Source: Amphiscolops sp. MND2022 (Eukaryota). Taken from it: DNA of 64,000 nt. This document shows positions 19,855-63,410 of this stretch, piece after piece. Each line of letters starts with the position of its first letter. Position 1 is the stretch's first letter. The notes under the pieces are model-generated. The model was not told the DNA's origin. It saw only the letters and a list, made by a program, of their open reading frames with translations, and did not search any database. The stretch covers positions 42,036,001 to 42,100,000 of the forward strand of contig OZ076413.1 of assembly GCA_964187785.1 (NCBI GenBank). The letters run 5' to 3'. The translations under genes and the position numbers were made by a program.

Positions 19855-20185
19855 ATGTTTCCAAAGTTCAATCTGTTTCCAAAAATTGCCCGAAAAGCTT
19901 TTCGTTTTGCTGGATCTAAAAAACTGTATGGGACCAAAGGGTCCCTCCCACCTTTGCGGTTTTCCTGGAAATGTCCAATGTTTCTGATTTTTTTCTCTCA
20001 ACATTCTCACCCTTTGTTTTTTGCCTTCAGTGAAAACGCTTTTTTAGAACCCAAAAGGCTTAGAACCTTCCTTCAATAATAGTTGACACTGAGATTTTTC
20101 AAAAACCACGCCTGAGCATACTTAGGAGACTCCGCCCTTTTTGAGCCTATAGCGGGGAGTCGACCTATGCCGATCCCAGCTTGTT
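19855..20185 (+). repeat. Interspersed repeat family A copy
   Basis: GGGACCAAAGGGTCCCTCCC, GACACTGAGATTTTTC and TTTTTGAGCCTATAGCGGGGAGTCGAC blocks match family A. Confidence 0.65.
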
Positions 20186-23224: not shown

Positions 23225-23526
23225 AGTACCAAAAAATACGGATCCGTATTTTTTGCGCTGATATTGTGTTCTCTGGTATTTTGACTCGTAACCAATTTTG
23301 AGTAATATAAAGTTGAAAGGCGACTATCAAAGTGTTTGAGCCAGTAATATGAATTTCAAGACTAGAAAAACAATTCAATTTCTCAAGTTTTCCATGACTC
23401 TTCAAGTTCCATGTCCGTCCGGGGTTCCGAGAAAGCTTCCCCGAAAGATGTAATGAAAATGGTGGAAAATCGTGTGAAGTAGATGGCACAGAAAACAAAT
23501 TGAAAACTAGCAATTTATTACAAGAG

Positions 23527-40020: not shown

Positions 40021-41975
40021 GGCTTCGGTGCGTTTCCTATGTGCTGATGGATCAGAGTCGGCGCCCGCTCAAATTTCGAAGAACCAAATAATGGTAAATT
40101 TTTATTGGTTTTCCGTGTCAAAATATACCCGAAGTGATACGCAAAAAACTCGAGAATCATTTTCCCTGACATAAGATCTTAAAAATTGTTTTGAATGAAC
40201 TAACCTCGTTCAAAAGGAAACTGTTCCAACACTTGACCTAAAGGAGATGACCCGCCCGATCGGCACCGTTTCCATTCCCCGAGGGTAGTTACTTTACTGT
40301 GGCAATAAAAACACTGCACTATCTGAATTGATCTGAATTACAGTTTTAATTCCAAACAGCTTTTTCCCTTAAGTACTGGTGAGTCGAATGACGTGAGCTA
40401 ATGGAGAGATGTTGCATAAGCACTACACGATAGAGCCTCACTTACTCACCATAAACAGTTTTTTTGCGGGAGTTGAGCATATAGTAATTCTACTTGACAC
40501 TACTGCTGAAGTTACATAATCGAAATAAAGCCACGATGCTCGAACAGTAGCGAGTCTATCCAAAGACTGATTGCTGGTTGGGCACCGTGGGCAGGATTAC
40601 CTTCCAGTCTCTTCCATTCTCCGATCATGCCTGTTGAGGTCTCTGGAATTAGCAAGATTTCTCAAGGTACAATTTAAAAACTTTGATCAGTGGCCTTTGA
40701 CCAGTTTCTTCTTCCGGTTCAAAGTCATCAAGCCTCGCATCCCATTTACCTTCCTAAAAATTGCCATGTGAAGGTAACCGTGTAAGTTGGTACAGGTCAG
40801 CTCGACGAACTCTCCAAAGGAACCGAAAAAAACTTCCATGGAACATTCGCGTTCAATCAATCAGGTTTTTTCATTGTAGCGCATCAAGACCTCGAAATGA
40901 TAGTTTGCAACACCAGCCTGGGCTTCCAGTGTTTTTTGTAGAACTTGAACAGAATTCCCTCATTGAGCCTGCGCGTCTGTCTTTTCACTGTTGTGTCTTC
41001 TTTTATTTTGCAAAGTTGCATCCTTCCTTTTTCGCTTTCTATCTCGCTGCAATTTCTGAGTGTGCCGTGACTTCTTCAAGCCTACATGGCATTTGTGAAC
41101 TGGCAGACGCTCAACACTATCAGTTTGTTCTCATTGAAAAACTAATGGAAGCAAACGGAAAAAAATTCACTGTTGAAACACCTGGAGCACACAACCCAGC
41201 CAGACAGTTCTTTCCAATAAAAATATGCCTGACGTAGCTTTGCGGCATGATTGCTTTCCGCAAGCGTCCCATTGAGCTCACCTATATTGGTTTATCATGA
41301 GTATATCAAAAAATGTTTCCTCAAAAATCTCTTGTTCATAGCAATTATTAATCGAAAAACAAAATTGCACAAAACAAATGGAAACAAGCTTTTTTGTCTA
41401 CTCGGCAGCTTCGCATTCCAAGGTCCTATTTTTTGAAGCAAAAAAAGCTCAAAGGCACCTCCGACAAATACTAACTAATCTCTAAAGTCGAAATTGAGAG
41501 TAATACATTGAGAGATCAAACGGTACCGACTCTATTCAAAGACTGAATGCTGGTTGAAACTCGGTAAAAAGGGTTCTTCTAGGCTCCTCTTTCCGTCTCT
41601 ACTCTCCGATTAGGCACGTTGAGGTCACTCGATTTGGCAAGGTCATACCCAAAGTAAAACATGATCATTGGCGATGAAACAGTTGGTTCTACCAGTCCAA
41701 GTTCAACATAAAAGAGACCTTAGCAGCAATATCTCGAACGAACCACAATGACGGACGTTGTCGACTTCTAGCACGAACATACTTAGAAAAGAGGCAATAT
41801 ACATACTTATCTACGACATGGAACCTCTTTTTCCTATACAACATGTGAAACTGCACGAACTTTCTTCCAGGCTTTTTTTGTGTGTGAGTTCAACATTTAA
41901 AAATCTTATTGAATTTTTCTTAGGAATTACAATTCATTTATAATGAATGAGAAGCGTTGATTACGAAAGCACTAA

Positions 41976-42307
41976 AATATCCTCTTTTCAGACATATTGT
42001 AGTTTTGGAATTATGGATTCTATTTGTATCTCGCGGACGAGCGATCTCTTCTGATGCATGGATCACAATCAACACTTTGAATGTTTCACTCTATTGAAAG
42101 GCGACTATTAAATATTCGAAAAAATTTTCTTAGGTTCTAAATATTATTCTCTTCGGATGATTGTAGTTCAAGTGAACAATTAGCTCACAGTTTGAAAGTG
42201 GATGATTATTTAAATGTCAAATACTTTTGAAGTCTAAATGTCATCAATTCGGAACTTGGAATTTGTCCTCAACTATGTTCTTGTTTAGGTCATGGGATAC
42301 TAAGTCA
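41976..42307 (-). mobile_element. LTR copy 1 (diverged member of the 326-bp LTR family)
   Basis: GGACGAGCGATCTCTTCTGATGCATGGATCACAATCAAC and downstream blocks shared with the LTRs at 46962, 58256 and 58745; termini degraded. Confidence 0.8.
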
Positions 42308-42919
42308 TTTTCCACTCAGAAAAATTCGGAGATGGTTCGGATATTTTCCGCATTGGCTTTGGATTGGTCATGAAAACCACCAAAGATTCCTCGTAAGCCA
42401 CAAGAGTCGGAGTTGCGCATGGCGACTCGGCTCCAAAAAGACCAACGGCTGCAAGGGCAGCTATACCTACTGCGGCCCCACGCCTTCGCCGGGTTGCGTC
42501 CGGCTTCAGTGGCGAAAGGAACATTGATGTTTCGTTGCGGTTAACCAGTAGATCATTTTGAGTTTCAGCAATTTCATTTTCAAATTGCAAAAGCATCCAG
42601 TTGACATTAACACCTGATGAAATGGTGGCAAAAACACTCGAAAAATTCAACGGACAAAAGAGTGATGGGACTTGCTACAAGTGAGAAAGCCTGTGAAGCA
42701 TGGCTTCGATATCCGGTTTCATCGAGAAGGCATACTGAGGAAAAGCAATCGAAAATCGACTAAAATAAATTTCTCGGACAATATGATTGTGCTACGTTCA
42801 TATAATAAAATTCTTCTCTCGAGTAGAGCATTTGGAACCGTAGAAGTCGCAATGTTAGAATTCCAATCACGCTAAACGGAATAAGGGACAAAAAGCAGAA
42901 GTAGGAGAAAGGAATACAT
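42308..42919 (-). pseudogene. env: env family 1, N-terminal fragment of element E2 (signal peptide, RRRR furin site, fusion peptide), truncated at LTR1
   Basis: MYSFLLLLLFVP..WNSNIATSTVPNALLE..SEKFI; ATRRRR|GAAVGIAALAAVGLFG, matching 47693-49744. Confidence 0.8.
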
Positions 42920-43206
42920 CGTGTCGAAGAAAAGCAAGAAAGGAAAAAAAGGTCGCTGAGTCACGCCAGAAATCTTGATGACACAGAAATTTCCTGTTGA
43001 AAATGTCAATTCTGAGCAGGATGTATTCGAAAAGCGACGCCATGAAACTCTAAATGTCTAAGAGTCATAATGATGAAATTTAAACTAAGAGTTTGGTAAA
43101 GTAGGCGGGCGTTTGGTCAACAAAACTTTATCGGTCAAGGATGTTCAAACTGAACTTTGTACGAAAAGCAACGCTAATCTTGACTTCGAGCTTTTCAGTT
43201 ATCAAA

Positions 43207-43590
43207 ATGAAAACCAAAATTCTTGTCGCTTTTTGTGTGGTATTCGCTATGTATTCGTCATGCGAAAAAAACAGTGCCGTAGCCAAACGTTCTGGTGCTG
43301 TTCGAATGCCACAAAATATGAAGTCAACGAAAGAGTTGTCTGGAGTGCGCTTTTGCCTTCAATGTGTAAAAAAGAGAAACGTTTGGTGGAAGAAGAAAAC
43401 AATGCAGTCACCTACGTCACGTTGACTTTGTAATTGGAAGTTTTGTCTGTTGTGGCCTGTGCGGGCACTGGTACCAGGGACGTAATCGAAAAAACTGAAT
43501 CGACAGCGAAAAGACAAAGACTGTTAAAAAGACAAAACACCCCAACCTTGACTGAACATTTATCCAGCAGTTTAATGTCTAGCAATTAAG
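43207..43590 (+). pseudogene. Antisense small Cys-rich membrane protein (ORF U), E2 copy
   Basis: MKTKILVAFCVVFA signal-like start, FWCCSNATKYEVNERVV, VTYVTLTL; conserved with 50017-50395. Confidence 0.5.
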
Positions 43591-43720
43591 TGCATGGACT
43601 TTTGGGCAGACAGTTTTTGTGGGACCAAAAACGGTTTGCAGTTGCTTTTGAAAAAGGCAGGAAAATGAAAAAACTAACAGTGAAGCCGTGAAACGTTTGA
43701 AGAGAGAAAAAAGTTTTAAA

Positions 43721-44059
43721 TTAGAAGAGTAAAAAAATGATGAAGTAGCGAAAAGACATCCGAACAGGCAATAAGGAAATTAGAGTTAGGTACAATTGTT
43801 CATATTGGATTCCAGCATCAACGTGACAGTGTATGTAATCCTCTGCATAGTGAATTCCTGTGACAAAGTATTCATGACCGGTCTTGAAACAGGTCCATCG
43901 TAATTGAATAGGAGAATTTTGAGTTAAGAGACCCATTGCAGGAGAGACGAATGTTGAAAGAATGTTAACAGGTGACATCGAACTGGCAAGTGGAGAGGAT
44001 GTGAAAAGAATGACTACCTCAAATTGAGGTACGTAAACAAAAAATATAAATTTCATCAC
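43721..44059 (-). CDS. Unknown accessory ORF V, E2 copy (112 aa, open)
   Basis: STFVSPAMGLL...FKTGHEYFVTGIHYAEDY...QYEQL conserved with 50661-51054. Confidence 0.55.
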   Translation of the reverse strand: MMKFIFFVYVPQFEVVILFTSSPLASSMSPVNILSTFVSPAMGLLTQNSPIQLRWTCFKTGHEYFVTGIHYAEDYIHCHVDAGIQYEQLYLTLISLLPVRMSFRYFIIFLLF

Positions 44060-44159
44060 AAAAAGTCGTCAACTCCGAAAGTGACAAGTTAATGTCAGAG
44101 TCAAATCGAACGTTCGATGAAAAAATGGGAAAAAGACATCAAATATGGTATTAAAATGC

Positions 44160-45078
44160 ATGGGTAAATTTCGAAGGAAGTAAAACAGCATATTTAGAAA
44201 ACAAGGGAGCCTTGTTTATATCAAGAATGTGTGCGATTTATGAAGCAAAAAGAGTGGATTAAAACGGAACTGAGAATGGAGGAAAGAATAAAATGGGTAA
44301 AACGAAAGTCGCGATGTAATATCGATGAAACTGGAGCCTTATTAAGGAAAGGTAGCCAAGTATTGACAAATGCAGAAATGGAAGAAATATTTGGACCAGT
44401 GCATTACAAGGGAGGCAAGCTTATGCGAGACGTTCGTTTGTTACGAAAAAAACTTTAGTCAGAAAGGGTATGTTTTTTCGTCATTTTTGGAAGGGCTAGG
44501 AAGAGCGTGTCAGCAGTAATTATTAACGATAATAACTTGTGAGATTTGATGACATCGAGATGTTATGTAAGAATTTACGTACATGCTCGAGTGCGAGAAC
44601 AGCTTGTGGGCTTTCCATGAAGGATATCAATTGGAAAGAGCGTCACCAGTTACCGATCAGTACCGCAGGCAGAACTGCTCTCAATTGAACTTTCAGTATG
44701 TAAAGGCTCCCGATGCGGAGTGTATAAAGATGGTATGATTCCGTGTTAGCTGAAGCAGGTGGAAAGTGCTGGTTTTCAGCAATTTGGTTTCTACTAGTTG
44801 GCAAGAAAAGCGGTGATTAAACTTTAAGGAGAAGCTACTAATATTTATGTAATATTCGGTTTTAAACTGTGTCTTTGTGGAGAATAAAGAACATGAATGA
44901 TCTGAACAACTTGAGAAAAGGTATCGAGAAACGCAGAAAGGAGCCTGATTCTGAGGAAATTTGCCTCAGGGTATTGAAGTACGCCACAATTCCCCGAGAG
45001 ATAGACGCGGTGACAAATTCGAACCAAGCCGTTCGAGAGCCTTGGGTGTGTAGTCTACTGGCCTTATTAGTCTACTAG
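44160..45078 (+). pseudogene. Integrase-Zn-finger-like + OTU-like gene, copy 2 (3'-truncated)
   Basis: VLTNAEMEEIFGPVHY..SFLEGLGRAC, GGKCWFSAIWFLLVGKKSG (Cys codon 44767), YATIPREIDAV..EPWV; each block aligns with 51154-52334. Confidence 0.65.
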
Positions 45079-45303
45079 CCTTATTAGTCTACTGGCACGA
45101 CGAAGACAATCAAGGGTGGATTCGCTGTCCAGCAGCGGGGCGCTCACCGACGTCTACTGTTCGAGGGACGTTGTTACTGCACTGGACACACTCAAGAAAG
45201 TATAAGATGTTCCATTGTGAGTCAATAATAAAATGGCCAATAGGAGAGATAGTTTGCTATTTTTAATGCATGTAAAAATCGGTGTAATGAATTGATTTGG
45301 CTG

Positions 45304-46337
45304 TTAGGGCTGACAAGTCATAAGAAAGAGCTCATGAAACGGAGCCAGTGAAAAATACAAAAAATGCTCGAGCACGTTGTTCTTAGTAGTCAAAACACAC
45401 TGAAAATGATTACACTCATGAACTGTCATCTGAGGAATTATCTCAGGAAAAGGTTTACTCAGGAAAGCTACTTTCAATTGATTAGAATTCTGACCACGAA
45501 TTTGGTTATAAGCACATCTTTGGACTTGCTGCGTTTGATTATCCTGAAGGACTTTCAGTTGATTTGTAAGTTTTAGGTTGCGTTCTTCAAACTGTTTAGA
45601 CATTTCATCTAGTCGATTGTCCAGCGCCTCTTGACTAGTACTCAATTTAGTCAGGGCAGTAACAAATGTGTCTGTTACTGATAATGTGTCTGTAACTGAG
45701 AAGCCGATTTCACTAAATGCATCAATGACTGCATCATCTGTTTTAAAGAAAAAATGGATTGAAAAATGTTTAAATGCAAAAATACAAATACATAAATCGT
45801 CAACTGTAATATTTTCTAGTTGTCTGGTATAATTTTAGGAACTGTCGCCGAATTGGCTTTGAAAGGGCCCTTTGAGGTGATCTATTGATATCTGGAAGAC
45901 GTGCAGTATCTTGATTAAAGCGTGTCTGTTCCGCAGCACCATCAGCTGCTGCGCCGTTTATTGGTGCGGCCGCTGGAGGATTAGGTTCCGGATACGCTTT
46001 AAAAGCGTTTGTCTGTAAAATTACGAGAGAGTTTTCCGGATTATCTGTTTTTGGATCGAACTTAAGGTTTTCGAGATTCAAAACCGATAACTCTTGTAAT
46101 TGCGGGTTGCAAGAATGGTTTTTATGTGCTTCAAGTGACAAAGCTAAATCATTTCGCATTGCCAATGATGAAGTTTTAAAATAGCAAAAAGCGGCATCAC
46201 GCAGATTCAAATGTAAAAACTTGCCTGTTGATTAGGGCAGCGACAGCAATAATACTCTGGAGCAAGTGCTCAAATTCTCGAAATTTTTCTTTTCCGATTC
46301 CAGAACAAGGAGTAAGAGTGGGGTGAGGTTGAGCCAT
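45304..46337 (-). pseudogene. gag: gag-like capsid ORF (frameshifted)
   Basis: MAQ..SGIGKEKFREFEHLL..FLHLNLRDAAFCYF..LENLKFDPKTDNPE..AYPEP, Ala/Pro-rich linker, coiled-coil and N/Q-rich C-terminus with Cys/His remnants; lies 3' of an LTR on the same strand. Confidence 0.6.
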
Positions 46338-46961
46338 AGTTTTCAGTTAAGACTGAGAGTTGAGAAGAAACGATTATAGGAAGAATAAGAGGATGAAAAT
46401 AGAAAATGATAAGTTAGTGAACTTCAAAACAAAAGTTTGGGATCTGAGAACCAAGAAAAGGAACTTGAAGCAAAAAGCAAAAATTAGACAAGGTTGCGTA
46501 TTCAAAAATCAGTTGTTCGAGACGTCCAATGACAAAAGGAAGAAATTTCATCAGTTATGAATGAATTGATCGATTCCAGAAAGTTTCCAGGACTTTCAGT
46601 GTTCTTCAAAAGGAGATTAGAAATGCGAAATATCTGTGAAAATTAAATCAGTCAGAATGAGTTGAGACCCAAAAAAGAACATCAATATCAAATTACTACT
46701 TCAAAACTGGCTTTAATCGCACCAATCGCATTTCTGTTGTAGTTGTGAAGTCATCGTGGAAGCCGATCGCATTGATCAAACCGAAAATAGTCGTCGAAAC
46801 ATCAACAACGAAGTCATGTAATTGAATTCTTTCACCCAAGACAGTTGCATTGAATATAGGCATTTCGTAAAATTTGAAGAATTCTTGTAGAAAACAAAAG
46901 CGAAGAACACGTTTTCTCAATGTTCAGTGTTTGTAGTTACAAAGATACTACCGGCCACTAA

Positions 46962-47287
46962 TGTATCCTCCTTTCAGACATATTATTTTGGAATCACAAT
47001 TTCTTTTTGGATCAAGAGGACGAGCGATCTCTTCTGATGCATGGATCACAATCAACTCATCTGTTTTACTCTATCGAAAAGGCGACTGTTCAATATTCGA
47101 GTTAGTCTCTGTTCTGTTTTAAATATTATTTACTTCGGATGATTATAATTTAGGTAAATAAACAACTCAAAGTTTGAGAGTGAATGATTATTTAAATGTC
47201 AAATAGTTTTGTAAATGTCATCAATTCGGAACTTCAGGAATTTATTCTCAATTATGTTCTTCTGTTTAGGTCATGGAGTACATGACA
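46962..47287 (-). mobile_element. LTR copy 2 (3' LTR of element E1), 326 bp
   Basis: On the - strand begins TGTCATG and ends GGATACA; 8 mismatches versus 58256-58581; immediately preceded by a polypurine tract. Confidence 0.9.
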
Positions 47288-47298
47288 CTTCCTCCCTT
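47288..47298 (-). promoter_or_regulatory. Polypurine tract (PPT)
   Basis: AAGGGAGGAAG directly abuts the TGTCA start of the 3' LTR on the - strand. Confidence 0.8.
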
Positions 47299-47692
47299 GA
47301 AAACACTTCCGGCGTCTAGAAGAAGCCATCATCTGGTTGGAGAAAGAGTACAGGTGGTATGCGACAGACCCAAAGTTGAGTAATCCCATATAGTTCCAAA
47401 TCCAATGAATATTGAATGTAAAGCCAGCACAAGATCCAAGTTGGCCCAAAAAGAAATTGTTGTCATCAAAGAAGTTGCATGGTGTCCAGTCCAGGAGTTG
47501 TTGTGCCAGAAATTTACTACTTTCGTATTTTACATGATACTGCAAGAAATATATGATTGAAATGAGTTTTATGAGAAAATAGATGATGATAGGAGAGGTA
47601 ATGCGGCAACAAGTCATTTTGAAAACAGTTCGTCAAGTCAAGCAAGTGGGAGTTTCATGCTGGTTATGATCATTGATATCAACCGGGACAGA

Positions 47693-49744
47693 TCATATTG
47701 ATGAAGTATCATACTGACGAGTATGTTTTGCTAATGATACGGAGGGATTAGAAAAATTACTCGACGCTTTGTTAGTAGCGTCTGTCAAATATTCGGGCGG
47801 TGGTTGAGGACGAACTTCTGGTTCAGCATTGAATTTGCCAAGCAGTTTCTTAAGACGACCATTTTTATGAAAGCGGTGGTAAAGGTACATGAAAAGAAAA
47901 TGAAGGGCAGTTGACACAAAGAAAACAACAATAGATAAAGTCAAAGAATTTTGAATGGAACAAACTGATTGAATTCGCGAGTCAAGGATGGTTTCATAAG
48001 TTTCATGTTTTTCGCAAAAGGACGTGCGATGTCTACCAATTGGTTGACTTGGCGAATTGGGGGTTGCTTAACAGTTCTTTTCTTACAGTGCCTAAGAAGT
48101 TTGCTCCTGTTTCTGCTTTCGTGGTGAAAAGAGGCAGATCCTCAAGAGGAGGAAATTCCATGATCAATGATTGTAAAGGATCAGGCAATGATAATCTCAA
48201 TTTAAATGCTGGAATTTGAGAACAGCTTGATAAGTCTGATCTTATTTTGATGTTATTAGTGCGAATAGTCATACCGCACTCCAATGTATTGATACATATT
48301 TGACAACCGGAGAATGATTTTGTTGATGATGATATTAGTTTCGCAAACTGATAGGGCTTCAAGAGAAGTGTCAAAAAACAAAGACGCAATACAGGAAGAA
48401 TGTCCTAACTCCGTTGTAAAAGTTTTGGAACAAATTCGGTATTTGGACGAACCGAGGCATTGTTCAAACTGGTCCTTGGATAAAACAGAAGATTCCATAT
48501 GGTCATCAGATAAGGCTAAATATGTTGCCTCAAGTTTCCAAGTAATAGCTAACTGAGGGTCATCTGGGTAAGGCATAGAAATAGTTTTTGCCTCATATAA
48601 AACAAAGACTGTTTGTTTCGACGCTAACGGTATGTTAAGGGTCAATAAGAGTCCTTCTGATATCGTGACAGCGTCTGCCAAAAGTCGAGAGTCGTAGTAC
48701 GACAAAAGATCCGAGGTCGGAATGGCCAAAGAAAGTCGGTCTGCTGCTTTGGCTTGCTGAAAAGCAACGTGATCCAAAATCACTAAAAGCGATTCCATAG
48801 GATTAAGCGACATCGGAAAATGTCCCTGCAGTAAAACTGGGATAGAATTTAAAAGGTTCATGCGGAAGCTTTTAACGCTGGCATGAATCATGGCCAATAG
48901 CGAAGAAATAGTATCGAAGTTGAAATTCAGTTGCTGATTGGCGAACAAAAGTTGGTCGCAATCCCGAAGGATGTTAAAATTGTCGGCATAAATGTCGAAT
49001 TGTTCTTGGGTAATAGCCCAATTAGTATTTTGGGTACGGCTCATTTCGGCTTGAATAGCTTGCAAAGCGGCAAGCTCGTTTTCCACTAAAAAAAATTTTC
49101 GTCCGTGTTAGTAGAAAGTTCCGTAACAAAATCCGTGAGAACATCTTGAAATTCCGAAATAATTCGAAAATTTTCCGCATTAGCTTTGGTCTGGTCATGG
49201 TAACCACCAAAGATTCCTCGTAAGCCGCAAGAATCTGAATTGCCCATGGCGACTCCGCTGCCAAAAAGACCAACTGCAGCCAGAGCGGCCATGCCTACCG
49301 CGGCCCCACGCCTCTGGCGGGTGGTCTCCGGCTTCGGTGGCGAGAGGAACATAGAGGTTTCGTTGCAGATAACCAGGAGGTCTTTTTGAGCTTCAGCAAT
49401 TTCGTTTTCGATTTGCAAAAGCCTCCAATTGACATTAAAACCCGATGAGTTGGTGGCAAAAACACTCGAAAAGTTTAACGGACAAAAAAGTGATGGTACT
49501 TGCCACAAAGTGGAGAGCCGATAAATCATGGCTTCAATATCCTGTTCATCGAGAAGTCATACTGAGGAAAAGGCACTTCTACTCGAATAAATTTTTCGGA
49601 AAGTAAGATTTTACTTCGTTCATTAAATAGAACTCCTTTTTCTAGGAGGGCATTTGGATCCGTTGAACCCTCAATATTAGAATTCCATTCACTCTGAACG
49701 GAAGCAGGAGCAAAAAACAAAAGTAGAAAAAGGAAATGCATCAT
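47693..49744 (-). pseudogene. env: env family 1: class I viral fusion glycoprotein (full length, several frameshifts)
   Basis: Signal peptide MMHFLFLLLFFAPASVQS; furin site RQRR (49319-49308) then fusion peptide GAAVGMAALAAVGLFGSGVAMG; heptad region ENELAALQAIQAEM; Cys-rich ectodomain; TM LSIVVFFVSTALHFLFMYLY and cytoplasmic tail. Confidence 0.85.
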
Positions 49745-50016
49745 GGCACTTTGAAGCAAAATTTGAAATAGTTCCAAAAGTCACGCTTGAAAACTTGATG
49801 TGAAAGAGATTTCCTGTCTGAAATGTCAAGCGTAGGCGATTATGGTTTTGAAAGTCACGCCATAATTTGTCAAATGTCATAGAGTCAGGATGTTGATATT
49901 TGATTCAAATACAGAGGTTTCCAGTAGGCGGAATTTGGTCAACAAAGTCTTCTAGTTGAACTGAGCTTTGGACTAAAACAATACTAATGTTGACCTCGAG
50001 CGTTTCAGTCATCAAA

Positions 50017-50395
50017 ATGAACTTGAAAGTTGTTGTGGCATTGGCCAACATCATGACTGTGTGCTTGTGTTGCCAAAGGCACAAATGGCGAAACAAAAAT
50101 GTCTGGTGCTGTGAAAACGGAACAAAAGTTGAGATTGATGGAAAAGTTGTATACTTATAAAGCGCCAATATGTCTCCGGAAAGAACTCATCAAAAAGGAA
50201 GAAAAAAGTCATGTTGTTTCCTACCTCATGTTAACGCTATTCCTGCTGGGAAGTTTCGTTTGCTGTTTGTTGTCTCTGTGGTCGCTGGTATCGGCGACGT
50301 CGGCAAGAAGAGTAAAGTTTAAAGTTCGACAAATACCAAAAACAAAAAACAGTTACAGTGTAGTGGAATGCGCAGTGAACAGTTATGGCAGTTGA
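50017..50395 (+). pseudogene. Antisense small Cys-rich membrane protein (ORF U), E1 copy
   Basis: MNLKVVVALANIMTVCLCC..VWCCENGTKVEIDGKVV (frameshift) ..VVSYLMLTLFLLGSFVCCLLSLWSLV (TM-like). Confidence 0.5.
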
Positions 50396-50660
50396 AAAGT
50401 TTGACATTGAATATTTTAAAATGAAGTTTTAAAAGTGAATGAAAGTTAAGCTACTGGTAAAAAAGTGTTCGCAGTTTTTAGTTTCTTTTGTTTAAAAAAG
50501 TTTTTACAGTTTGTTTTTTTGAAGAGTCAGGAAAAACAAGACGAAAACTAACAGAATGTGGAAAAAACCAAAAGAGCAAATAAATAGTTGAAATTAGAAG
50601 AGTATAAAGAAGGAAATAGGAAAGTTACTGCCAAATATACGAGGAGTTAATGAATGTTTG

Positions 50661-51054
50661 TTAAAGTTGTTCATACTGATATTTCAATGCTCTGCGGAGT
50701 CGAAGCATTTTAATGATGCCCCTGAGACCATGTGATTTGGGCATGGTAAAATTTTTTGAATGCAGGAGGAGAGTAAATTCAATCCACCGAGGGGATCCAT
50801 ATATCAGGACCACATCAGGTCCGGAAGTCAACGTCAGAGTTACGGTGTAGTCCTCCGCATAATGAATGCCGGTGACAAAATAGTTTTGGCCTGTCTTGAA
50901 AGTGAATAGGAAAGTCAAGAATGAGAAGACCCATTACCGGAGAGTGAAAAGTTGAATGAATGCTAAGAGAGGATGATCCAACAAGCAAGTGACGAAAATT
51001 CTAAACAAGTGACTGACTCCGGTCGAGTGGAATAAATAAGACGATAAATGTCAT
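50661..51054 (-). pseudogene. Unknown accessory ORF V, E1 copy
   Basis: STFHSPVMGLL..FKTGQNYFVTGIHYAEDY..QYEQL, with one stop and one frameshift relative to 43721-44059. Confidence 0.55.
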
Positions 51055-51153
51055 GACAAAGTCATGAACTTTAAATATGTCAACAAAATATGAACGAAAA
51101 GCGATCGTTCGAAAAGGAGAAGAGAAAAAACATCAATCAGGGCTGGAGGTGAC

Positions 51154-52334
51154 ATGACGAAAATTCAGAAAGAATTAAACAAAATTATTTCAGAGAAAAC
51201 GGAGCCTCTAATGAATGCTGCTATTTTGGAAATGATAAGGAGTGACAAGTTGGATCCACTCGTAACGCAAACACAACAGATGAAAGATATGTGGCAGAAA
51301 AGAATGAAGATGTTCAACAGAGAAGGAGAAACCTTGTTTTTTTTGGGGGGGGGGGGGCAAGGTTGTGCCTACCATCAAGAAGATGGAAAATATAATTTTG
51401 CCACTACATTATGAAAAGGATCATTCCATTGATATACGAGTGATGAGGGATGCCTTAACTGCAAAAAGGTACGGGTTGCCGTCGTTTCTAGGGGGCCTGG
51501 ACAGAGCTTGCAAACTGTAAGTTTAGTGTAAATATGATTGGAATCATAAATCATCTCACTTCACAACTGTTTAGGGTGTTACATGACTGTCCGCAATGTT
51601 TCTGGAGATTGCATCAAGGCAATCAATGGCAGAGGGCAGTAAGTGTGCCTTATGAGAGAAGAAAAGAAATATGCAAGCCATTGAGAATGAATTTCCGGAA
51701 AGAAACGGACGCATATTTCAGAGAATGGGCAATGTGGGGATCGGAGCCACCTTTTGCCACATGTAAGGCAAGATATGCACAGGGAGCCGGAGCATGCTGG
51801 TTTTCTAGTGTATTCTACCTACTATGTGGTAAGAAGAGCGGTAAGTAGTTGCTAGATGAGCAAAGAAATTTCCAAACAAGGACTAAACACGGTATTGCTT
51901 TTAGAGAAAAAGAAAGTTGGAAAAGTTTTGCAGAAGTTGCGAGATGAGATAGCGCAAGTAATGAGTACTGTGGCTTTTGAGGAGGAAGCAGTACGAACAT
52001 TGGGATACTCGACCAATGTGTTTGAAATTGAGGCGGTGCGGCAAAAGAATGCCTATGTCAGTGAACCATGGGTCAGTATCGAGTAGCCATGAAGAAAAAA
52101 CTTGGTCAGAATGAAAAAGCATTGTGAAAAATTTAGATGTTGGGTACAGCAAAGTGGCTCCAACATGACATATTAGTCTTCTGGAGATATGATGCCGGGA
52201 GGAGCTGGATTCGTTACCCAGCTTGGGAACGAAAAGGAGGGCCAAGATCGGCTTTCTTGTTTCACGTCATCCATTCAGAAAAAGAAAAACTCTTTCATTG
52301 CGAGCCCTTAGTGGAGTGGCCGGTAGAAAGGTAG
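51154..52334 (+). pseudogene. Integrase-Zn-finger-like + OTU-like cysteine protease, copy 3 (antisense within E1)
   Basis: VVPTIKKMENIILPLHY..H..RYGLPSFLGGLDRAC; QGAGACWFSSVFYLLCG (Cys codon 51795); KLRDEIAQVM; LGTAKWLQHDILVF..WIRY; AFLFHV..LFHCEPLV (His codon 52296). Confidence 0.7.
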
Positions 52335-52894
52335 GTGTCTGTTTAAGAGTCAAGTCAAAATGGTTGAAAAAGAAAAATTGTAAAGAAATGCAATTTAGCA
52401 AGGATGAGTCATATTGCGCTCATGAAGAAAGCGAGAAACCGCTAGCAAAAAGCGCAAAAAACTCATGGAGAGAGGGTGTGTAAGCAGCAAAACTCAAAAT
52501 TGATATCATGAAGTCATATTTCCTCCAAATTCAAATGATTAAACCCCAATAATTTTGTGCAGCAAACGCTAGCGGGAAGCAAAAGGAAGTCATGCAGACC
52601 CATTGAGGCCATGTGGAGGGAAGAAAGGTACAATTTTTGGACACTAAAAATCAAGCAAAATTGAAAAACAAACAGCTCACGCTGTCTACGGTTATTTTAA
52701 AATTTTTCCTCTGGGATTCTGGATTTGTACTCATTTTCAGATTCTCCATGAAAAGTTAGGCTCCCGCCCTTTTTTCTTAAGTCCGTAGATAAATTTTAAC
52801 ATAAGAGTTTTCATGTTGAAAGTTCGAATTTTTCACTTATAGCGTAAGTCGGAAAAAAAATGTCAGTCAATCTGACAGGGAGCAACGCTGTGGC

Positions 52895-53395
52895 TCAAAG
52901 TGGAGAGCGTTCCAAAGAGCAGAGAGCAATGCTCGAGCGTACCGGTTGGCAGATTGTATTTGTGATGTTAAATTGCGAAAAAACTTGAAAAAGAAGAGAG
53001 AAAACTGTTGGCCAATGAAGCTCGTCATAGCCGCTTCCAAGTCTCGGAATGTTCAATGCTCGAATATTGTGGCGTTCCATATGGCGCTTCAGGGCCGTAA
53101 GGCCAACTGCAGGCTGTTGTGGGTAGTACAATGAAAAAAATTTTGTTTGGTGACTAGAGCATAAACCAATTTTTGCGTTTGTTGATCATAATAAGCTATC
53201 AGTGAGCCCGGCGGCGAAGATCTTGAAGTTATTTGTGCTAAATTTTGGAGAGCAGGGTAACGACTGGCTATAGCAGAAGCAAGGCTGAAGCAAGGCTCTG
53301 AAGAAAATCAGAGGATGTGCTGTATGCGAAAGACTCATTAGAAGTTAAAAGACTAGACTGCGAAAAACAAATTTTAGGATAAACTGAAGTTGCTA
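52895..53395 (-). pseudogene. TARG1/OARD1 (Poa1p-like) macrodomain, two frameshifts
   Basis: Reconstructed PKICFSQSSLLTSNESFAYSTSSDFLQSLASAIASRY..LVYALVTKQNFFH..LQLAL.ALKRH..LNIPRLGSGYDELHWPTVFSLLFQVF aligns with human TARG1 (YLITK84..SMPRIGCGLD125RLQW). Removing an 11-bp tandem duplication (53276-53297) restores the frame. Confidence 0.75.
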
Positions 53396-53404
53396 TGATA
53401 GCAT

Positions 53405-56400
53405 TTACATCATTATTTGAAGGGCGTTTTTCAAATTTTTCAACGAATAACGTGATTTAATTTCCTTCTGTCGCCGGAGATATTCAAGCGGCATTTCTGC
53501 TTGAGTAGGTTGCGCAATCGGACGTGGAGAAGTCGTAGACTGAGATGGTCCACTCAGATGTGAAGAAGACAAACCCATTGTTTCACGTGTACGTTCTAAT
53601 GATTCCAAAATTGATTGTCGTTTCTGTTCTTGAGTAGTAGTAGGTGATTCGCGCATAATACTCGAGGATGGAAGATAGCGTTCTCGATGTGGAATTTTGG
53701 CTTCACTTTTAAATCGAGTTTCAGAGTATTGAACTGGATGTAACCGCGGGCGCAAGTTTCTAGTCAGTGGTTGTGTATTAGCCGATTCAACCTGTACTGG
53801 AGGATCTGGCGACAGTGGTGGACCGGAGGTGTCCAGATTTATGTCCGAAAGGTCAGTTCGAACTGTATTCTCGCCCTCCGAGTCCTCTGATAATATTGGA
53901 GTATTCGGGGGATCTTGTACTAAGAGTGGTGGAGGACCTCCCACTGCCACTTCGGGTGCTGGCACTGGCGGAACAACCGGCCCAGGTGCAGGGGCAGCTG
54001 CTGGAGCAATCGGAAAGTGCAGCGACATCGTAAGTGGAGGAGGATCATCCTCAACAACTGGTGTGGAAATTAGCTGTGGAGGGGCTTCCAATAATGAAGG
54101 AAGACTTTCATCAAACAGGTCAGGTTCACCTCTAAATTGACCTAATGACGGGTCGCATTGAAAATTTTCGAAAGTTATTACAGGTATGTCACCTACACGA
54201 CTTTGAGGTGTTATTGGGCGGAGACGAAAGCGATGAACGCATTGAGTATAGTTTGTGCCCACTTTACGAATAATATAAATAGAATTAGTCAAAATTTTTT
54301 CTTTTCGATATAAGGAAAGCCAAATTGGTAAAGATTTACTAGCAGAATCGGATTGCGTCATTAATTTCGGGTTGAGCAACAGACAGTATAAAAAAAGCGA
54401 AAGCGGTTTGGCTTCAGCTTTATAATCATAATATGTGCGATATTTGTTGTACATGTCAGTAAGTTTTTGTCGCGTTTCTGAAAACTTTTTATTCATTGCG
54501 TCTTGTAGAGCAAAAACGTATTCGCTATTTGGCGAGTACCTTTCAATCATACAGTTGTTAAAGCGTACATCTAAGGGTTTAATCGGTTCACGGCCATGAA
54601 AAAGAACAGTTGGACTACATCCGATCGCTGAATGATAGGATGTATTATGTCATTCCATTGATCATTCGTGTTAAGTTTAAGAATTCGTTTGAGTGCACCA
54701 TGCGATCTTTCAACAACACCTACTGTTTGTGGGTGTTTCAGGCTCGCGTGTTTCAGTTTGACTTCAGGGAGTTTAGCTAATTCATGCATTAATTCAGAGA
54801 CAAAAGATGTGCCTAAGTCTGAGAGAATAGTGCCTGGGATGTAACTATGACGAAAAATTATTAGTGTTAATTCACGAGCTATAGTATCGGCGCGGACATT
54901 TGTCAATGGAACAGGGAAAAGATATTTAGTGAAAACATCGATTGCTGTTAAAACGTAATGATCATGTGGTGACTGAAGAGGACGCACTATGTCAATTTGA
55001 AGAGTTTCGCCTAGATAGGATGTTTATGACGAAAGTGGTTGCAATGGGGGTTTTAAGTATTTTGACGGGGCACATTTTAATTGAAGACAGGTGAGACAAT
55101 TTTTGATCGATGACAGTAAAAATTCTGTAAAATTAGGAAAATAAAATCGTTTTCGGAATTCGGCGATTGTTTTTCCGATGCCAAAATGCCCTGCTGTTTT
55201 AGCGTTATGAAGTCGAAAAACAACCTCACGCCAGAGATGTTTAGGAACACAGAATTGCTTGTTTTGTACTTTGCCACAGTCGTCATAAAATAGACGATAT
55301 AAGACATCGTGTTCAAGAATCAGGCGATTGAACTGTTTTTTTATATTTTCTCAGTGCGATAGGAAGATTTGGGGACTGATCAAGGCTGCCTCGAGCAAGC
55401 CAGAAAATAACTTCAGAAATTACTTCATCTTTTCGTTGTTCTTGAGCCAAGTCAAGAGATAGCGATCGGTCCGGCAAAGCATTAATATTATCTTCAAAAT
55501 CATTGTTTTCAATATGGTTCACCTGGGGGACTTGGGTTAGCGAAAAACGTCCAGTTATGGAATCAGCGGGATCTTCTTTAGGTTGACTTGCTAAGAAATG
55601 GTCATAAAGACCATGTTTTCGAAGTTGTTCAAGGAATTGTGCATCAACCGGTTCAGTAGTGTTGTCTGGAAAGTTTTGGACACTCTCAATATTGGACAGA
55701 GAAACATCCGGGGATTTAGCTGCCGTTTCAATTTCAATTTCCCTAACTGGGACACGATCTGTTAATTTAATTTGGAGACTCAGACTTGGATCGGTTTGCA
55801 TGCGGGAAAGAAAATCGGCTGCTGCATTTGCCTTGACAGGAATATGTGCTAGTAAAATGTTAAACGACAAGACTCGATCAAGGCAATTCCATAGAGAGGG
55901 GTGAATGCTTTTAGATTGAAAAAACTGCGTAAGACTACGATTATCAGTTAAGACAAGAACAGGTTTTGTGGCGCCCCAAATAAAATGTGCAAAATGCTCA
56001 AGAGAAAAATAGAGCGCTAAAAATTCCTTGTAGTACACAGAAAAATCCAATTGAGTAGAAGTAAAAAGTCGTGAACCGAAGGAAACTGGAGCATATGTTT
56101 TTTGTTGTTTACCATTTTGATCTATCAAATAGTCTTCAATCATTAGAACAAAACCAGTGCCATGAAAACTGGCGTCGCAAAGTATTACATATTGAAGACC
56201 GGGTTTAGGTAATTGTAATGTAAGATTGGTAGCACGTTTCAGGTCAGCTTTTAACTATTCAAGGTTTTTATAGTGGTCATCAGTGATCAAAAAGTTATTA
56301 TCTTTTCGTAAAGGGCGGTAAAACGGTAAAAGTTTGTCGCCAAGATTCGGCATGAAAGTTCGAAAGTCGAAAACTGCACAAGGCCAATGAGTCGTTTAAC

Positions 56401-58230
56401 TTGTGTCACGGTGTTTGGCATTCTGATTTGACCCAAGAATTTTTCGATTTTTGCACTTTCAGGCGTGATGCCTTGGGGGTTATTGTATTGCCTAAGTAAT
56501 CAATTTTTGTTGTGCCAAATTCGCATTTATGGGCGGAAAGCTTCAGACCAGAGGCTCTCAAACAATCAAAAATTTTCCTCAGAGCAGGGATCAATTCTTC
56601 AAAATCATTGACACCTGCGGCAATATCATCCATGAATTGAGTGCATATGTTGGCGGCTAAGCATGGGTCAAGGTAGTGCTTGATAAAGGAACTAAATCCT
56701 GTGACAGATTTATTAAGCCCTTGAGCCAAACAATTGTAGGCGAAAGTTCGAGAGGCAAAATTAAATGCCAAAAGTTGGACAGAAAGGTCATCCGCCATTT
56801 GTACACAATGATATGCTTGTGAACAATCGAGTGTGCAAAACAACTTTTTCCCGGCGAAGTGATTTGTGGCATCAGTCATGGCGTAAAAGATGGTTCACTC
56901 GTCGCAAGTCAATTAAAATTCGCATTTTGCCAGATGCTTTGCGGTGAACAAATATTGGGCTACTGTATTTGGAATGTGGCAAGGTCGTTATTATATTAAA
57001 GTATTGTAACAATGCCAATTCAACCAAAAGTTCGTCGCGTAGGTGAATTGGAGCAGGTGGACCTTGAACGTAAACAGGAAGTGGATGTTCGGGCGTTAAT
57101 TTGATCTTTAACTCGGTATCATATCCTACGTCAAATCGATGTTTAGCAAACACATCGTGGTACTCAACCACGAATTTGTCCAGGTCCTGTTTTTGGTCAT
57201 GACTCGAAACACAAGTATCCCATGAAAATTTCTTCAAAAATGCCTGTCGATCAGACTCATTTTCAGCAGGATTCTTTTTTCCTAGGCGTTGCATTTGTAG
57301 GATCTGATCATCAATTTCGCGTTGTAAGGGAGTTAATGACGAAAAGTCAATACAGGTTTCCAGTGTGGGAAACCATAGTTTAGAATAATCTGGGGGCGAA
57401 CGACCTGTAGGTGTATCAATTTTTTTGAAATGAAAATCTTGAATTAACTGATTGAGTTCACTCTCAAAGTCATCAGGATTTCTCATTTTCGCTAAGGAAA
57501 TCAACTGAGGGTCAATCGGGATAAGATCATCTGCATCGGATTCGTTCAAAATTTGGATTTGAGCAATTTCAGTTTTGTTGTTAAATATAATTCGTGTATC
57601 GGAAAAATTTATAGCGGATATGAAAACTTTGCCACTATCATCAATAGTATTAAGTGAAGAGGTTAAAACTACGCTGCTTTTATCTTCCATTGGCGGACTA
57701 GGTATAACAAGTCCAGTACAATTTTTGTATTCATCGTTGTCAAGTTGGCATTCCAAAAGAGCTTGAGACTGAGGCGGAATATGCACCTTTTTTGTCAAGA
57801 GAAGAGAAATTTTTGGTAACTTTTTCGTGAAATGTGACTTTTTTCCTTGTTCAGGAAAATTTTGATTAGGTTGTACAGTTAATTCGGGCAAATGTAACTG
57901 ATTGCTTTTTGGGTCAATCGTAATATTATGTTTCTTGAAAAAAAGGGTTTCCAAGAATGATACTATTCATAGTAGGCATTATCAGAAAGCTATCTTGGAA
58001 GGTATGCTGTCCGATTTGAAATGCTATTTGGCTTGTTTTTCAATAGAAACTCGCTGGCCTGCTGCCATTCGGACTGAGTGGAAAGAAGGTTCTTGTAGAA
58101 TAATTTGATCCGGTATTGATTTTTCCAATTCTAAGAAAAAGCATTGAGGCAGTGCATATGCACAAGAGCCTGTATCGATTAAGACTCGCCTTTTTAATTG
58201 ATTATGAAATTTTAGACGGACATAAGATAA
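53405..58230 (-). pseudogene. pol: pol polyprotein remnant: aspartic protease, RT, RNase H, integrase, Pro-rich C-terminal extension
   Basis: Protease LIDTGS; RT YSSPIF..KMRILIDLRRVN, LDCSQAYH, QFMDD; RNase H KEFLALYF..VLTDNRSL; integrase AIDVFTKY..SDLGTSF..HPQTVGVVERSH. Ty3/gypsy order; many stops and frameshifts. Confidence 0.92.
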
Positions 58231-58237
58231 GTTTTCT

Positions 58238-58251
58238 CCTTCTGTCACCCA
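58238..58251 (-). promoter_or_regulatory. Primer-binding-site-like motif (tRNA-Leu-like)
   Basis: TGG(G)TGACAGAAGG follows the 5' LTR after a TTAG spacer; a similar GTGACAGAAAG follows LTR4. Resembles the common TGGTGTCAGAAG Leu PBS of gypsy elements. Confidence 0.55.
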
Positions 58252-58255
58252 CTAA

Positions 58256-58581
58256 TGTATCCTCCTTTCAGACATATTATTTTGGAATCACGATTTCTAT
58301 TTGGATCAAGAGGACGAGCGATCTCTTCTGATGCATGGATCACAATCAACTCATCTGTTTTACTCTATCGAAAAGGCGACTGTTCAATATTCGAGTTAGT
58401 CTCTGTTCTGTTTTAAATATTATTCACTTCGGATGATTATAATTTAGGTAAATAAATAACTCAAAGTTTGAGAGTGAATGATTATTTAGATGTCAAATAG
58501 TTTTGTAAATGTCATCAATTCGGACCTTCAGGAATTTATTCTCAATTATGTTCTTCTGTTTATGACATGGAGTACATGACA
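58256..58581 (-). mobile_element. LTR copy 3 (5' LTR of E1), 326 bp
   Basis: TGTCATG...GGATACA on the - strand; 318/326 identical to 46962-47287. Confidence 0.9.
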
Positions 58582-58744
58582 CGGCCCTTTTCTGTTCCGT
58601 TTCACGAGCAGTGGATGTGGATGTGGACATGGATGCAAGTAGTGGGCGTCCGGGCGTGGCCTGTATATTCCATTCAGACAGAAAGAAGATAAGTATTATA
58701 TAGTGTGATTTGAAGTTGATTGTTATCTTTCTGTCACTAACTAA

Positions 58745-59080
58745 TATATCCTGTTTTCAAACATATTTTAGTTTTGAAATTATGGAGGATTCTGTTCAGA
58801 TCAAGAGAACAAGAGATCTCATCTGATGCATGGATCAGAATCAACACTTCGAATGCTTCACTCTATCGGAAATCGACTATTCAATATTCGGGTTAGTCTT
58901 TATGTTGTAAAAACTATTCGCTGCGGATGATTATAATTTAAGTAAACAAGTAGCTCAAAGTTTGAAAGTGGTTGATTAAATAAAAGTCAAAACGTTTTGA
59001 AGTCTGAATGTCATCAATTTCAGACTTCAGGAATTTATCCTCAACTATGTTCTTCTGTTTACGTCACGGAATACAAGACA
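58745..59080 (-). mobile_element. LTR copy 4 (diverged)
   Basis: Same family, starts TGTCTTG on the - strand, followed by a PBS-like TTAGTTAGTGACAGAAAG. Confidence 0.8.
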
Positions 59081-62502: not shown

Positions 62503-63410
62503 TAGGGTCCAAAGCGGACCGGTGTCGTCCGCCGTCCGCACTATCGGTCCGCCGTCCGCAGTCCGCATTTCTCAGAAATGCGGTCCACCGCTTTATGTGC
62601 ATGGCCGTACATTTCTGAGAAATAGGAATTAGGAATGTCACTTTAGCTGCTGCGTTATTTATATAGCTACGTTGCGGATCAAATTTACTCTCTTTGCTTT
62701 TAAGAATTGTGCTTTTGGCTTTCAAGAATTGTGCATGGCTGCAAAAATTGTGCTGATTGGGTTACATTTTGTCAAAAGTACACATCCTTGAAGAATGGGG
62801 TAACCACGCCAGGAATCGGTACAAATGAGTTAGCATTTTACGAAAAGTATACTGTTATTTTCGTAACGGAAATTTTGCATTGTATTAACGGAAATTGTTC
62901 TGATATCTCTCCCAAAGCTAGACACTGGCTGGAATTGCTTTCCAATGACAGATTACAGGATTTAGATGAATTGGTAATGCAGCGCATGATTTCCTCAACC
63001 CCTGCCGATGAAACTGTTTCACGATTGAAACGATTTGCGGATTTGGTTCTATCAAAAATCATTCTGAGCGAAGCTGAAGTGGAGCGAGTGTTTTCGCGTC
63101 ACAAAAGTATCCACACGAAAATGAGATCCAAACTTGATCCAAGTATTGTTGAAAAAATTGTATTTGTAAGGTACAATGGTAAGAATGTAAAAATTGCGCC
63201 TCCTGAATTTTGTGCGGATGACACTTGCGCTGATGATGAATTTGAGGCACTTGAAAATGATGAATAATTTGTACTTTCATTATCAGTTTTGAAAATTAAT
63301 CTTCTTTTGAAGTTGTTTTTTTAAGAATGGTCCGCATGTTCGGTCCGTAGTCCGCGCCCTCCCGTCCGCAGTCCGTGAATTTATGGCGGACCGGACCATT
63401 TTGGACCAGT
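62503..63410 (+). mobile_element. Internally deleted hAT DNA transposon retaining the C-terminal dimerisation domain
   Basis: 8-bp direct flanks TGATCGCA (62495-62502 and 63411-63418), imperfect TIRs with GGTCCAAA core, many subterminal GTCCG(C) motifs, ORF 62707-63267 containing SEAEVERVFS..HTKMRSKL..VEKIVFVRYN. Confidence 0.85.

Follow-up and report, generated by a model that had tools for sequence, protein, structure and literature searches.

A decayed env-bearing Ty3/gypsy-like element of Amphiscolops sp. with a macrodomain in Pol and a predicted intron-bearing gene on the opposite strand

The 64,000-nt stretch of DNA analysed here, referred to as the window, belongs to the genome of Amphiscolops sp. 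MND2022 (assembly GCA_964187785.1, contig OZ076413.1, positions 42,036,001 to 42,100,000). Between 46957 and 58581 it holds a retroelement bounded by long terminal repeats (LTRs), termed the main element or main copy below. Positions are those of the window, and features of the element lie on the minus strand unless the plus strand is named. From 46.9 to 58.6 kb, nearly all large open frames run on the minus strand. Since the element is read on this strand, the right-hand repeat (58251..58581), which begins TGTCATG, is the 5′ LTR, and its pair at 46957..47287 is the 3′ LTR. Each is 331 nt long, and the two differ at 8 positions with 0 insertions or deletions (2.4% divergence); a repeat finder ran the 5′ LTR 2 nt further, which is chance identity. 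A perfect 5-bp target-site duplication, GGCCG, is present on the 5′ side (58582..58586) and the 3′ side (46952..46956). The polypurine tract AAGGGAGGAAG (47288..47298) directly adjoins the 3′ LTR. Pfam searches of the pol region identified RVT_1 (1.3e-20), RT_RNaseH (7.9e-13) and rve (5.4e-6) in this order, with a D-T-G-S protease motif upstream. The arrangement protease (PR), reverse transcriptase (RT), RNase H, integrase (IN) is that of Ty3/gypsy pol. Because of its LTR pair, 5-bp duplication, purine tract and domain order, the main element is a real LTR element of Ty3/gypsy type on the minus strand. A preliminary description of this DNA had placed an LTR element at 46962-58581. The element, its LTRs, its polypurine tract and its domain order were all recovered, with the strand corrected to minus and the start to 46957.

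Searching with the longest env piece yielded at least 213 homologous proteins, nearly all from ENA assemblies, and six relative loci were retrieved (L001 to L006). L003 (ERZ26859043) is a 16.3-kb element with 327-nt LTRs, gag, pol, a macrodomain, an antisense gene, the small open reading frames (ORFs) V and U, and env. L001 (ERZ25074608), with approximately 60-80% protein identity to the main copy, has the same order, its antisense gene/V/U block being present as a tandem duplicate. L004 (ERZ26859043) has the macrodomain, the antisense gene and env, and L005 (NCBI GCA_029980085.1) is an env relative on a 5-kb contig. L006 (ERZ25074608) is a paralogue 92.6% identical to the main copy over 9.7 kb. 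L002 (ERZ26859043), with 46% identity from PR to RT, stands for a lineage further removed, in which a dUTPase-like domain, the macrodomain and env are kept. The two ENA assemblies that supplied nearly all relatives are filed as metagenome analyses (contigs of 0.1-0.9 Mb at 30-120x coverage); these contigs look like eukaryotic host contigs.

The main copy is without gag and without most of the leader, so that its PR frame begins a few bases after the 5′ LTR. Its L003 counterpart has a leader of about 1 kb and a 307-codon gag, with a CCHC knuckle ahead of the protease. The approximately 16 nt that follow the 5′ LTR of the main copy (58236..58251) read TGGGTGACAGAAGGAG and comprise a remnant resembling a primer-binding site (PBS), starting TGGGTGACAG, and the first leader bases. 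The corresponding site is TGGTGACAG in L003, where it lies two bases 3′ of the 5′ LTR, and TAGTGACAGAAAGAT in an older copy described below. No tRNA gene matching the remnant was found in the window. The polypurine tract of the main copy also precedes the 3′ LTR of L003.

Breaks in the reading frames were counted from open pieces that match the true frames of the relatives, partly by hand in pol. From PR to the macrodomain, pol carries approximately 8-10 frameshifts and 2-3 in-frame stops. There are 5 frameshifts in env and 1 each in the antisense gene (in its first exon), ORF V and ORF U. Overall, some 16-18 frameshifts and a few stops are distributed over pol, env and the three small genes, and every gene is broken. 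This load fits neutral decay since insertion at an LTR divergence of 2.4%.

The main element is itself nested. An older, internally deleted relative spans 41971..59080 on the same strand, and its 5′ LTR (58740..59080) and 3′ LTR (41971..42307) are 82% alike and flanked by the duplication GCTTA/GCTTT. Its 5′ LTR is followed by the degenerate PBS TAGTGACAG. Inside these LTRs, roughly 150 nt of leader precede the main element. On its far side come a gag remnant (45481..46337), recovered by tblastn with L003 gag (52-64% identity, E 1.7e-62), and then, at 42308..45250, the antisense gene, V, U and the beginning of env, arranged as in the main copy; the older element has lost pol, its macrodomain and most of its env. 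The main element was inserted into the leader of this older, pol-less relative. What the preliminary description had called a diverged element at 42308-45078 does repeat the block in the same order, and is only part of the older element at 41971..59080.

The pol gene of the main copy (52937..58235) encodes PR, a dUTPase-like domain, RT, RNase H, IN and a macrodomain, and is broken. Pfam matches locate the RT core (the RVT_1 part) at 56481..56864, RNase H at 55886..56110 and the integrase catalytic core at 54745..54960; the counterpart ORF of L003 has both Integrase_H2C2 and rve. Between PR and RT, a stretch overlooked in the preliminary description (57567..57816) scored 21.5 bits against the Pfam dUTPase profile, for which the cut-off is 22. 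L002 gave 15 bits in the same place and over the same region of the profile. When a profile of three sequences from this region was compared with the PDB, 7/7 matches were dUTPases, including those of feline immunodeficiency virus and equine infectious anaemia virus (best E 0.022), and the window piece alone had no match there. On these comparisons a dUTPase domain in Pol is probable.

The C-terminal Pol domain (52937..53444) is a macrodomain whose TARG1/OARD1 type was confirmed by sequence comparison. The window piece matched human OARD1 (4j5r) at 4.3e-5, and the intact 243-codon ORF of L002 matched it at 1.1e-28 over the whole domain (residues 40-182 against 17-158). Pfam had no match for the window piece, and the L002 ORF scored 21.5 bits against Macro, just under the cut-off of 22; the domain surfaced through PDB sequences and the better-preserved relative. 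TARG1 proteins share the pattern TKx(30,35)Px[IL]GxGxD, which contains the catalytic Lys84 and Asp125 (PMC6397177). The window macrodomain keeps LVTK and PRLGSGYD, today in different frames. L002 has TK, 33 residues and PQMGCGLD, with Met replacing Ile/Leu. In L003 the C-terminal region of IN and all three macrodomain segments share one frame with a single stop, and for this reason the macrodomain is assigned to the C-terminus of Pol. It had been listed earlier as a separate gene; its identity as a macrodomain stands, and its separateness does not. A search returned 64 ORFs related to this macrodomain. Outside the family, the sole match with a named source was the macrodomain of a giant virus (Hokovirus), at 41% identity.

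Opposite the interval between pol and env, on the plus strand, four consecutive open pieces in different frames match relatives. The open frame stops at one spot, right after G-K-K-S-G, in many independent copies, and splice sites rather than mutations were therefore suspected. In a DNA alignment of five copies, donors of the form GT(A/G)AG and acceptors reading (T)TTAG or TTCAG are conserved and flank short, poorly conserved stretches that separate well-conserved blocks. Only introns shared in position were accepted for the splice models. The resulting gene (51154..52483, plus strand) has five predicted exons separated by intron 1 (51517..51574, 58 nt, GTAAGT...TTTAG), intron 2 (51841..51904, 64 nt, GTAAGT...TTTAG, just past whose donor the open frame of many independent copies ends), intron 3 (52072..52136, 65 nt, GTCAGT...TTTAG) and intron 4 (52331..52398, 68 nt, GTAGGT...TTTAG). 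Excising the four predicted introns joins all blocks in one open frame that ends with TAA at 52481-52483. In L003, removal at the same four positions also gives an open frame (introns of 74, 67, 63 and 81 nt). The positions are common to L003, L001, L006 and the old copy, and GT and AG are intact at all four introns in L006. The N-terminal part, set apart in the window by the exon-1 frameshift, is conserved with L003. A hexamer resembling a poly(A) signal lies 55 nt past the stop (52538..52543, plus strand) and is a consensus match only.

A codon-position test was used to examine constraint, by counting the differences between the window and L003 at positions 1/2/3. The joined exons of the antisense gene gave 105/74/176 (p = 9e-11), a distribution like that of RT (36/23/79, p = 7.8e-9) and env (71/38/134, p = 1.8e-13). 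Shifting the frame by one base moved the excess to the expected position, and on the opposite strand the alignment collapsed. The gene occupies the same place, opposite pol and between pol and the 3′ LTR, in 7 copies. By these results it is a genuine protein-coding gene, constrained while the family diversified. The retroelement would have retained the predicted introns because they are antisense to the genomic RNA, whose splicing cannot remove them.

The preliminary description had named the product a zinc finger-OTU protein. The second exon was searched against 1.84 billion representative sequences, which returned 29 short fragments from within the family and a single protein from outside it, P0144, at E 8.9e-5. 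P0144 is a protein of the ctenophore Pleurobrachia bachei with three Pfam OTU domains (2.5e-15), and the match takes in the 40 residues that lead up to the G-x-G-x-C-W-[FY] Cys box as well as the box itself. The family profile scored 30.8 bits on P0144, compared with a maximum of 5.7 in 2000 shuffles. With hhalign, the family aligned to P0144 at 72% probability (E 3.3e-5) over 137 columns, extending into the helices after the Cys box. The Cys of this box is kept in 16/21 family fragments, and a conserved F-H-C-E-P-L stretch lies at about the distance of an OTU His box. Ahead of the putative OTU domain is a conserved H-x-C-x2-C-x4-H motif, the zinc finger of the earlier account, for which no family match was found.

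Several findings weigh against the OTU assignment. The exon pieces and family fragments had no match to Pfam OTU even at E up to 1, and neither the antisense piece nor the family profile A2 had a match among PDB sequences. Neither local nor global profile alignment paired F-H-C-E-P-L with the His box of P0144, or found an acidic residue to pair. A search for relatives of P0144, from which a broader OTU profile could be built, returned P0144 itself, leaving the link on one protein. These findings raise the alternative that the gene was selected but encodes something else, either another cysteine protease or a non-enzymatic regulator that binds zinc or nucleic acid, resembling nuclear proteins encoded antisense by plant elements or deltaretroviruses. 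This alternative would agree with the missing Pfam and PDB matches, with a similarity to P0144 that takes in the Cys box and what precedes it but does not reach the His box, and with the conserved H-x-C-x2-C-x4-H motif; the antisense ORFs of plant elements likewise have no enzymatic assignment, and some of their products are nuclear (PMC7264820). It fits less well with an alignment that continues through the helices after the Cys box, with the retention of the Cys in most fragments and with F-H-C-E-P-L standing where an OTU His box is expected. We consider this alternative rather unlikely, and regard the antisense product as probably an OTU-like cysteine protease. Of the earlier OTU claim, then, the homology at the Cys box to P0144 holds; Pfam and PDB gave no confirmation, and the His box is unmatched.

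Two further small genes lie between the antisense gene and env. Both had been proposed earlier and both are present in the proposed order and recur in relatives. ORF V (50661..50934) is a sense gene of about 90 codons whose start and stop are conserved in 4/5 aligned copies. At the amino-acid level it is 40-43% identical to its counterparts in L001 and L003, and changes are rarest at codon position 2 and commonest at position 3 (p = 0.004-0.04). No Pfam match was found for ORF V. ORF U (50017..50395, plus strand) is antisense and is predicted to encode a small type I membrane glycoprotein with a layout shared with relatives. It is intact in both L001 copies, L001a and L001b (103 codons), and in L003 (118 codons). 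The common layout consists of a signal peptide, C-x5-W-x5-CC-x-N-G-[ST], a membrane span and a basic tail. Its codon test is only suggestive (p = 0.075), and Pfam had no match for the window piece. Invariant in all five copies of the alignment, the sequence TTTCAG stands directly upstream of the ORF U ATG (50001-50016, plus strand). By analogy with spliced retroviral antisense transcripts, it may serve as the acceptor to which a leader exon further upstream on the antisense strand is joined.

The env gene (47693..49744) is broken, and its pieces encode, in order, a signal peptide (MMHFLFLLLFF...), an RQRR site, an adjoining hydrophobic Gly/Ala-rich stretch that would be the fusion peptide, long helical segments and a C-terminal membrane span as anchor. 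A full-length relative, P0159 (671 residues), has the same layout. Neither the window piece nor an env profile had a Pfam or PDB sequence match. A first AlphaFold model, made with 30 sequences, reached a predicted local distance difference test (pLDDT) score of 38 and was unusable; a second, made with 113 sequences, reached 51. When the second model was compared with the PDB by Foldseek, the top 50/50 matches were pneumovirus or paramyxovirus F proteins or foamy virus Env (best E 4e-4). In a viral library the matches were chuvirus glycoproteins (4e-14), baculovirus F and the spikes of nidoviruses (torovirus, coronavirus). Because the template modelling (TM) scores were low in both comparisons, the fold matches are supportive and not conclusive. 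The assignment of env as a class I F-type fusion protein is thus supported, not conclusive; the fusion fold of the preliminary description is supported by sequence features and by fold matches that are almost all to class I proteins, and weakened by a low-confidence model.

The arrangement of these genes recurs in the same order in six further copies, namely the older copy, L001 (twice), L003, L004 and L006. Synteny across copies had been proposed earlier as a check, with relatives lacking the cassette as the contrary outcome; the copies just named have it. Because of this recurrence, the cassette is a trait of the family and no locus-specific insertion. One might still suppose that the opposite-strand frames belong to an unrelated element or gene that inserted at this locus, since the main element is itself nested and the window is rich in transposon remnants. 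This is extremely improbable. The block has the same order and orientation between the macrodomain and env in copies from two other assemblies, no repeats or target duplications bound it, and the different flanks of the copies speak against a single segmental duplication. In L001 the tandem antisense gene/V/U blocks between macrodomain and env are at 4576-7003 and 7146-9271. Part of env is duplicated in L003 by internal direct repeats (3982-7182) that are 95-98% identical and spaced 1248 and 2189 nt apart.

On the sense strand, the more complete relatives are organised as LTR, PBS, a leader of about 1 kb, gag with a CCHC knuckle, Pol (PR, dUTPase-like domain, RT, RNase H, IN, TARG1-type macrodomain), V, an F-type class I env, polypurine tract and LTR. 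The five-exon gene and U are on the opposite strand in the pol-env interval. The order LTR-PBS-PR-RT-RNase H-IN-macrodomain-antisense gene-V-antisense U-env-polypurine tract-LTR that was first described for the main copy survives, with the macrodomain now a Pol domain and the PBS only a remnant. The "four accessory genes" of that account are better counted as two extra Pol domains (dUTPase-like and macrodomain) and three genes (the spliced antisense gene, V and U), and extra coding on both strands is upheld. So is the proposal of an env-carrying Ty3/gypsy-like lineage with such added capacity, for the extra genes recur across the family. Taken as a whole, the locus holds a decayed copy of an abundant env-bearing Ty3/gypsy-like family with extra genes, nested in an older copy; the full account, including the roles proposed below for the extra genes, is judged likely.

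The distant relative L002 has an unspliced 371-codon antisense ORF (8134-9246, minus strand) between macrodomain and env, and this ORF is no kin to the OTU-like gene. It had no Pfam and no PDB match. Since an unrelated ORF occupies the slot in L002, the OTU-like gene is not universal in the wider group, and the slot between pol and env seems modular.

LTR retroelements are able to capture host sequences, as reviewed for plants (PMC7264820), and a slot that carries different genes in different lineages invites the thought that the extra genes are passengers, that is, host fragments (OARD1-like, OTU-like and a small membrane protein) acquired by transduction or template switching and not serving the element. 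The closeness of the macrodomain to cellular OARD1, and the introns that the antisense gene keeps as a cellular gene does, could be read in the same way. Other findings speak against passengers. The antisense coding sequence and V share the codon-position pattern of RT and env between lineages about 50% diverged in protein, and two lineages with just 46% identity from PR to RT both retain the macrodomain's catalytic residues. U is open in three copies, and the macrodomain is fused in frame to Pol. A passenger origin without function for the element is accordingly judged improbable.

If the extra genes do serve the element, the macrodomain, as a part of Pol, would be made together with the replication enzymes. 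With the TARG1-type Lys and Asp, it may remove ADP-ribose from proteins or nucleic acids and so counter restriction of the PARP type. Like retroviral antisense genes, the antisense gene would be expressed from an antisense transcript of its own, and its product, if an active OTU enzyme, would strip ubiquitin-like marks. The four introns, being antisense to the genomic RNA, would be copied at each round of retrotransposition. By analogy, the family may carry an arsenal against ubiquitin and ADP-ribosylation defences, as the preliminary description had suggested; that it is an invertebrate lineage, as proposed there too, is plausible. More specifically, the family might be an undescribed lineage of "complex" errantivirus-like elements of approximately 14-16 kb, coding on both strands, in which a Pol-borne TARG1-type hydrolase, an intron-bearing antisense OTU-type deubiquitinase and an antisense membrane glycoprotein act jointly as anti-restriction accessory factors. 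We put this forward tentatively, as somewhat short of an even chance.

A number of points count against the overall account of the locus. The dUTPase signal is borderline, and both env models are of low confidence. L002 keeps the macrodomain and env with another antisense ORF in the slot. Between the main copy and the 92.6% identical L006, no codon-position bias was observed in any gene, RT included, which indicates neutral decay only; this pair is uninformative on constraint. The main copy and L006 arose in one burst and are both dead, and the main copy cannot perform any of the proposed functions. Lastly, we infer splicing and expression of the antisense gene from sequence, and the counter-defence role of the cassette is likewise a deduction.

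Env-bearing gypsy elements are known in many animal phyla, and those of the non-insect "ancient errantiviruses" have an F-type env (Chary and Hayashi, eLife 2026, PMC13524379). The present family resembles them in having gag, pol and env between LTRs, an env with signal peptide, furin site, fusion peptide and anchor, fold matches to F proteins of paramyxovirus/pneumovirus type, and many copies per genome. A macrodomain, OTU, dUTPase or antisense genes are unmentioned in that account (PMC13524379). In contrast, the present family has about 3 kb with three extra genes between pol and env, and two extra Pol domains.

In the Juno, Vesta and TelKA LTR retrotransposons of bdelloid rotifers, a dUTPase domain separates PR from RT, and pol is followed by captured ORFs of various kinds (Rodriguez et al. 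2017, PMC5408684). The present family shares the capture of ORFs and has its probable dUTPase at the corresponding position, and one rotifer lineage has a paramyxovirus-like env. The rotifer ORFs, however, encode env, a DEDDy exonuclease, a GDSL esterase, coiled-coil and membrane proteins, and no macrodomain, OTU, antisense genes or introns are reported for them (PMC5408684). The LTRs also differ at their ends, being TG...CA in the rotifer elements and starting with TG and ending with ...AGT in the present family.

HBZ of human T-cell leukaemia virus type 1 is a spliced retroviral antisense gene. Like HBZ and the antisense ORFs of plant elements, the five-exon gene is a protein-coding gene opposite gag-pol that lies between pol and the 3′ LTR, and with HBZ it would share splicing too. 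The present family differs from these systems in having four predicted introns, two antisense genes and a recognisable enzyme-like motif in one product, and its env and introns look animal-like. The plant ORFs occur between pol and the 3′ LTR in the Ty3/gypsy elements Grande, RIRE2 and Retand; no domain is recognisable in them, and the same review urges that spliced antisense transcripts be looked for (PMC7264820).

Human TARG1/OARD1 (PDB 4j5r, 2lgr) is similar over its full length to the L002 domain and shares the TK...PxLGxGxD pattern. It is a free cellular protein of about 150 residues, whereas the putative hydrolase described here is fused to the C-terminus of Pol. Nairoviruses and arteriviruses carry OTU deubiquitinases. 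Coronavirus nsp3 combines a MacroD-like macrodomain with a USP-like papain-like deubiquitinase. The present family may be likened to nsp3, as the preliminary description did, in that one parasite would have both an ADP-ribose-removing domain and a cysteine protease possibly removing ubiquitin-like marks. This is a functional analogy only, as folds and origins differ (here TARG1-like and OTU-like) and the two activities would be on different strands and in different proteins. OTU proteases have also been described in Helentrons and Ginger1 transposons (PMC6431247, PMC2836005). The likeness of the antisense product to the OTUs of mobile elements and viruses consists of the G-x-G-x-C-W-[FY] Cys box and similar preceding sequence; the nearest match is the ctenophore protein P0144. 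Unlike those, the OTU-like gene has no direct Pfam OTU match and is a separate, predicted-spliced gene placed antisense within an LTR retroelement. In the open-access literature, our searches turned up neither a retroelement Pol bearing a macrodomain nor an LTR retroelement in which an antisense gene with several introns encodes an OTU-like product.

The remainder of the window is transposon-rich and includes probable host exons. On the plus strand, a single open frame of 2280 codons (23500-30342) is probably a giant exon of a host gene; it had no Pfam match, abounds in Glu, Ser and Asn codons, and starts with a Cys/His cluster resembling a B-box and coiled-coil-like sequence. An AAG-rich array with periods of 3, 51 and 108 lies inside it (27593-28095). 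Leucine-rich repeats at 18986-19591 (plus strand; Pfam LRR_8, 8.8e-15) are probably also a host exon. A remnant of a hAT dimerisation domain (62707-63264, plus strand, 5.7e-5) and a weak match to Integrase_H2C2 (35839-36480, plus strand, 0.0015) were also detected. Outside the window, L001 is adjoined by a non-LTR retrotransposon (19765-21458; Exo_endo_phos_2 and RVT_1), so that several classes of retroelement are present in that genome.

Env-bearing Ty3/gypsy elements outside insects have recently been catalogued and are described as gag-pol-env; the present family would change that picture. It suggests that a host-derived enzyme of the ADP-ribose system can be fixed onto the polymerase of a retroelement. 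The antisense placement of the five-exon gene suggests how a retroelement may maintain several introns in one gene through reverse transcription. For annotation, it urges caution, since what look like frameshifts in the antisense frames of a retroelement may in fact be introns. If the macrodomain and OTU-like products are active, PARP-type and ubiquitin-type restriction of retroelements in these hosts, and its evasion, would be open to study by sequence, expression and structure. If the fuller reading is true, the family would be a retroelement counterpart to the accessory genes of complex retroviruses, with introns preserved by antisense placement.

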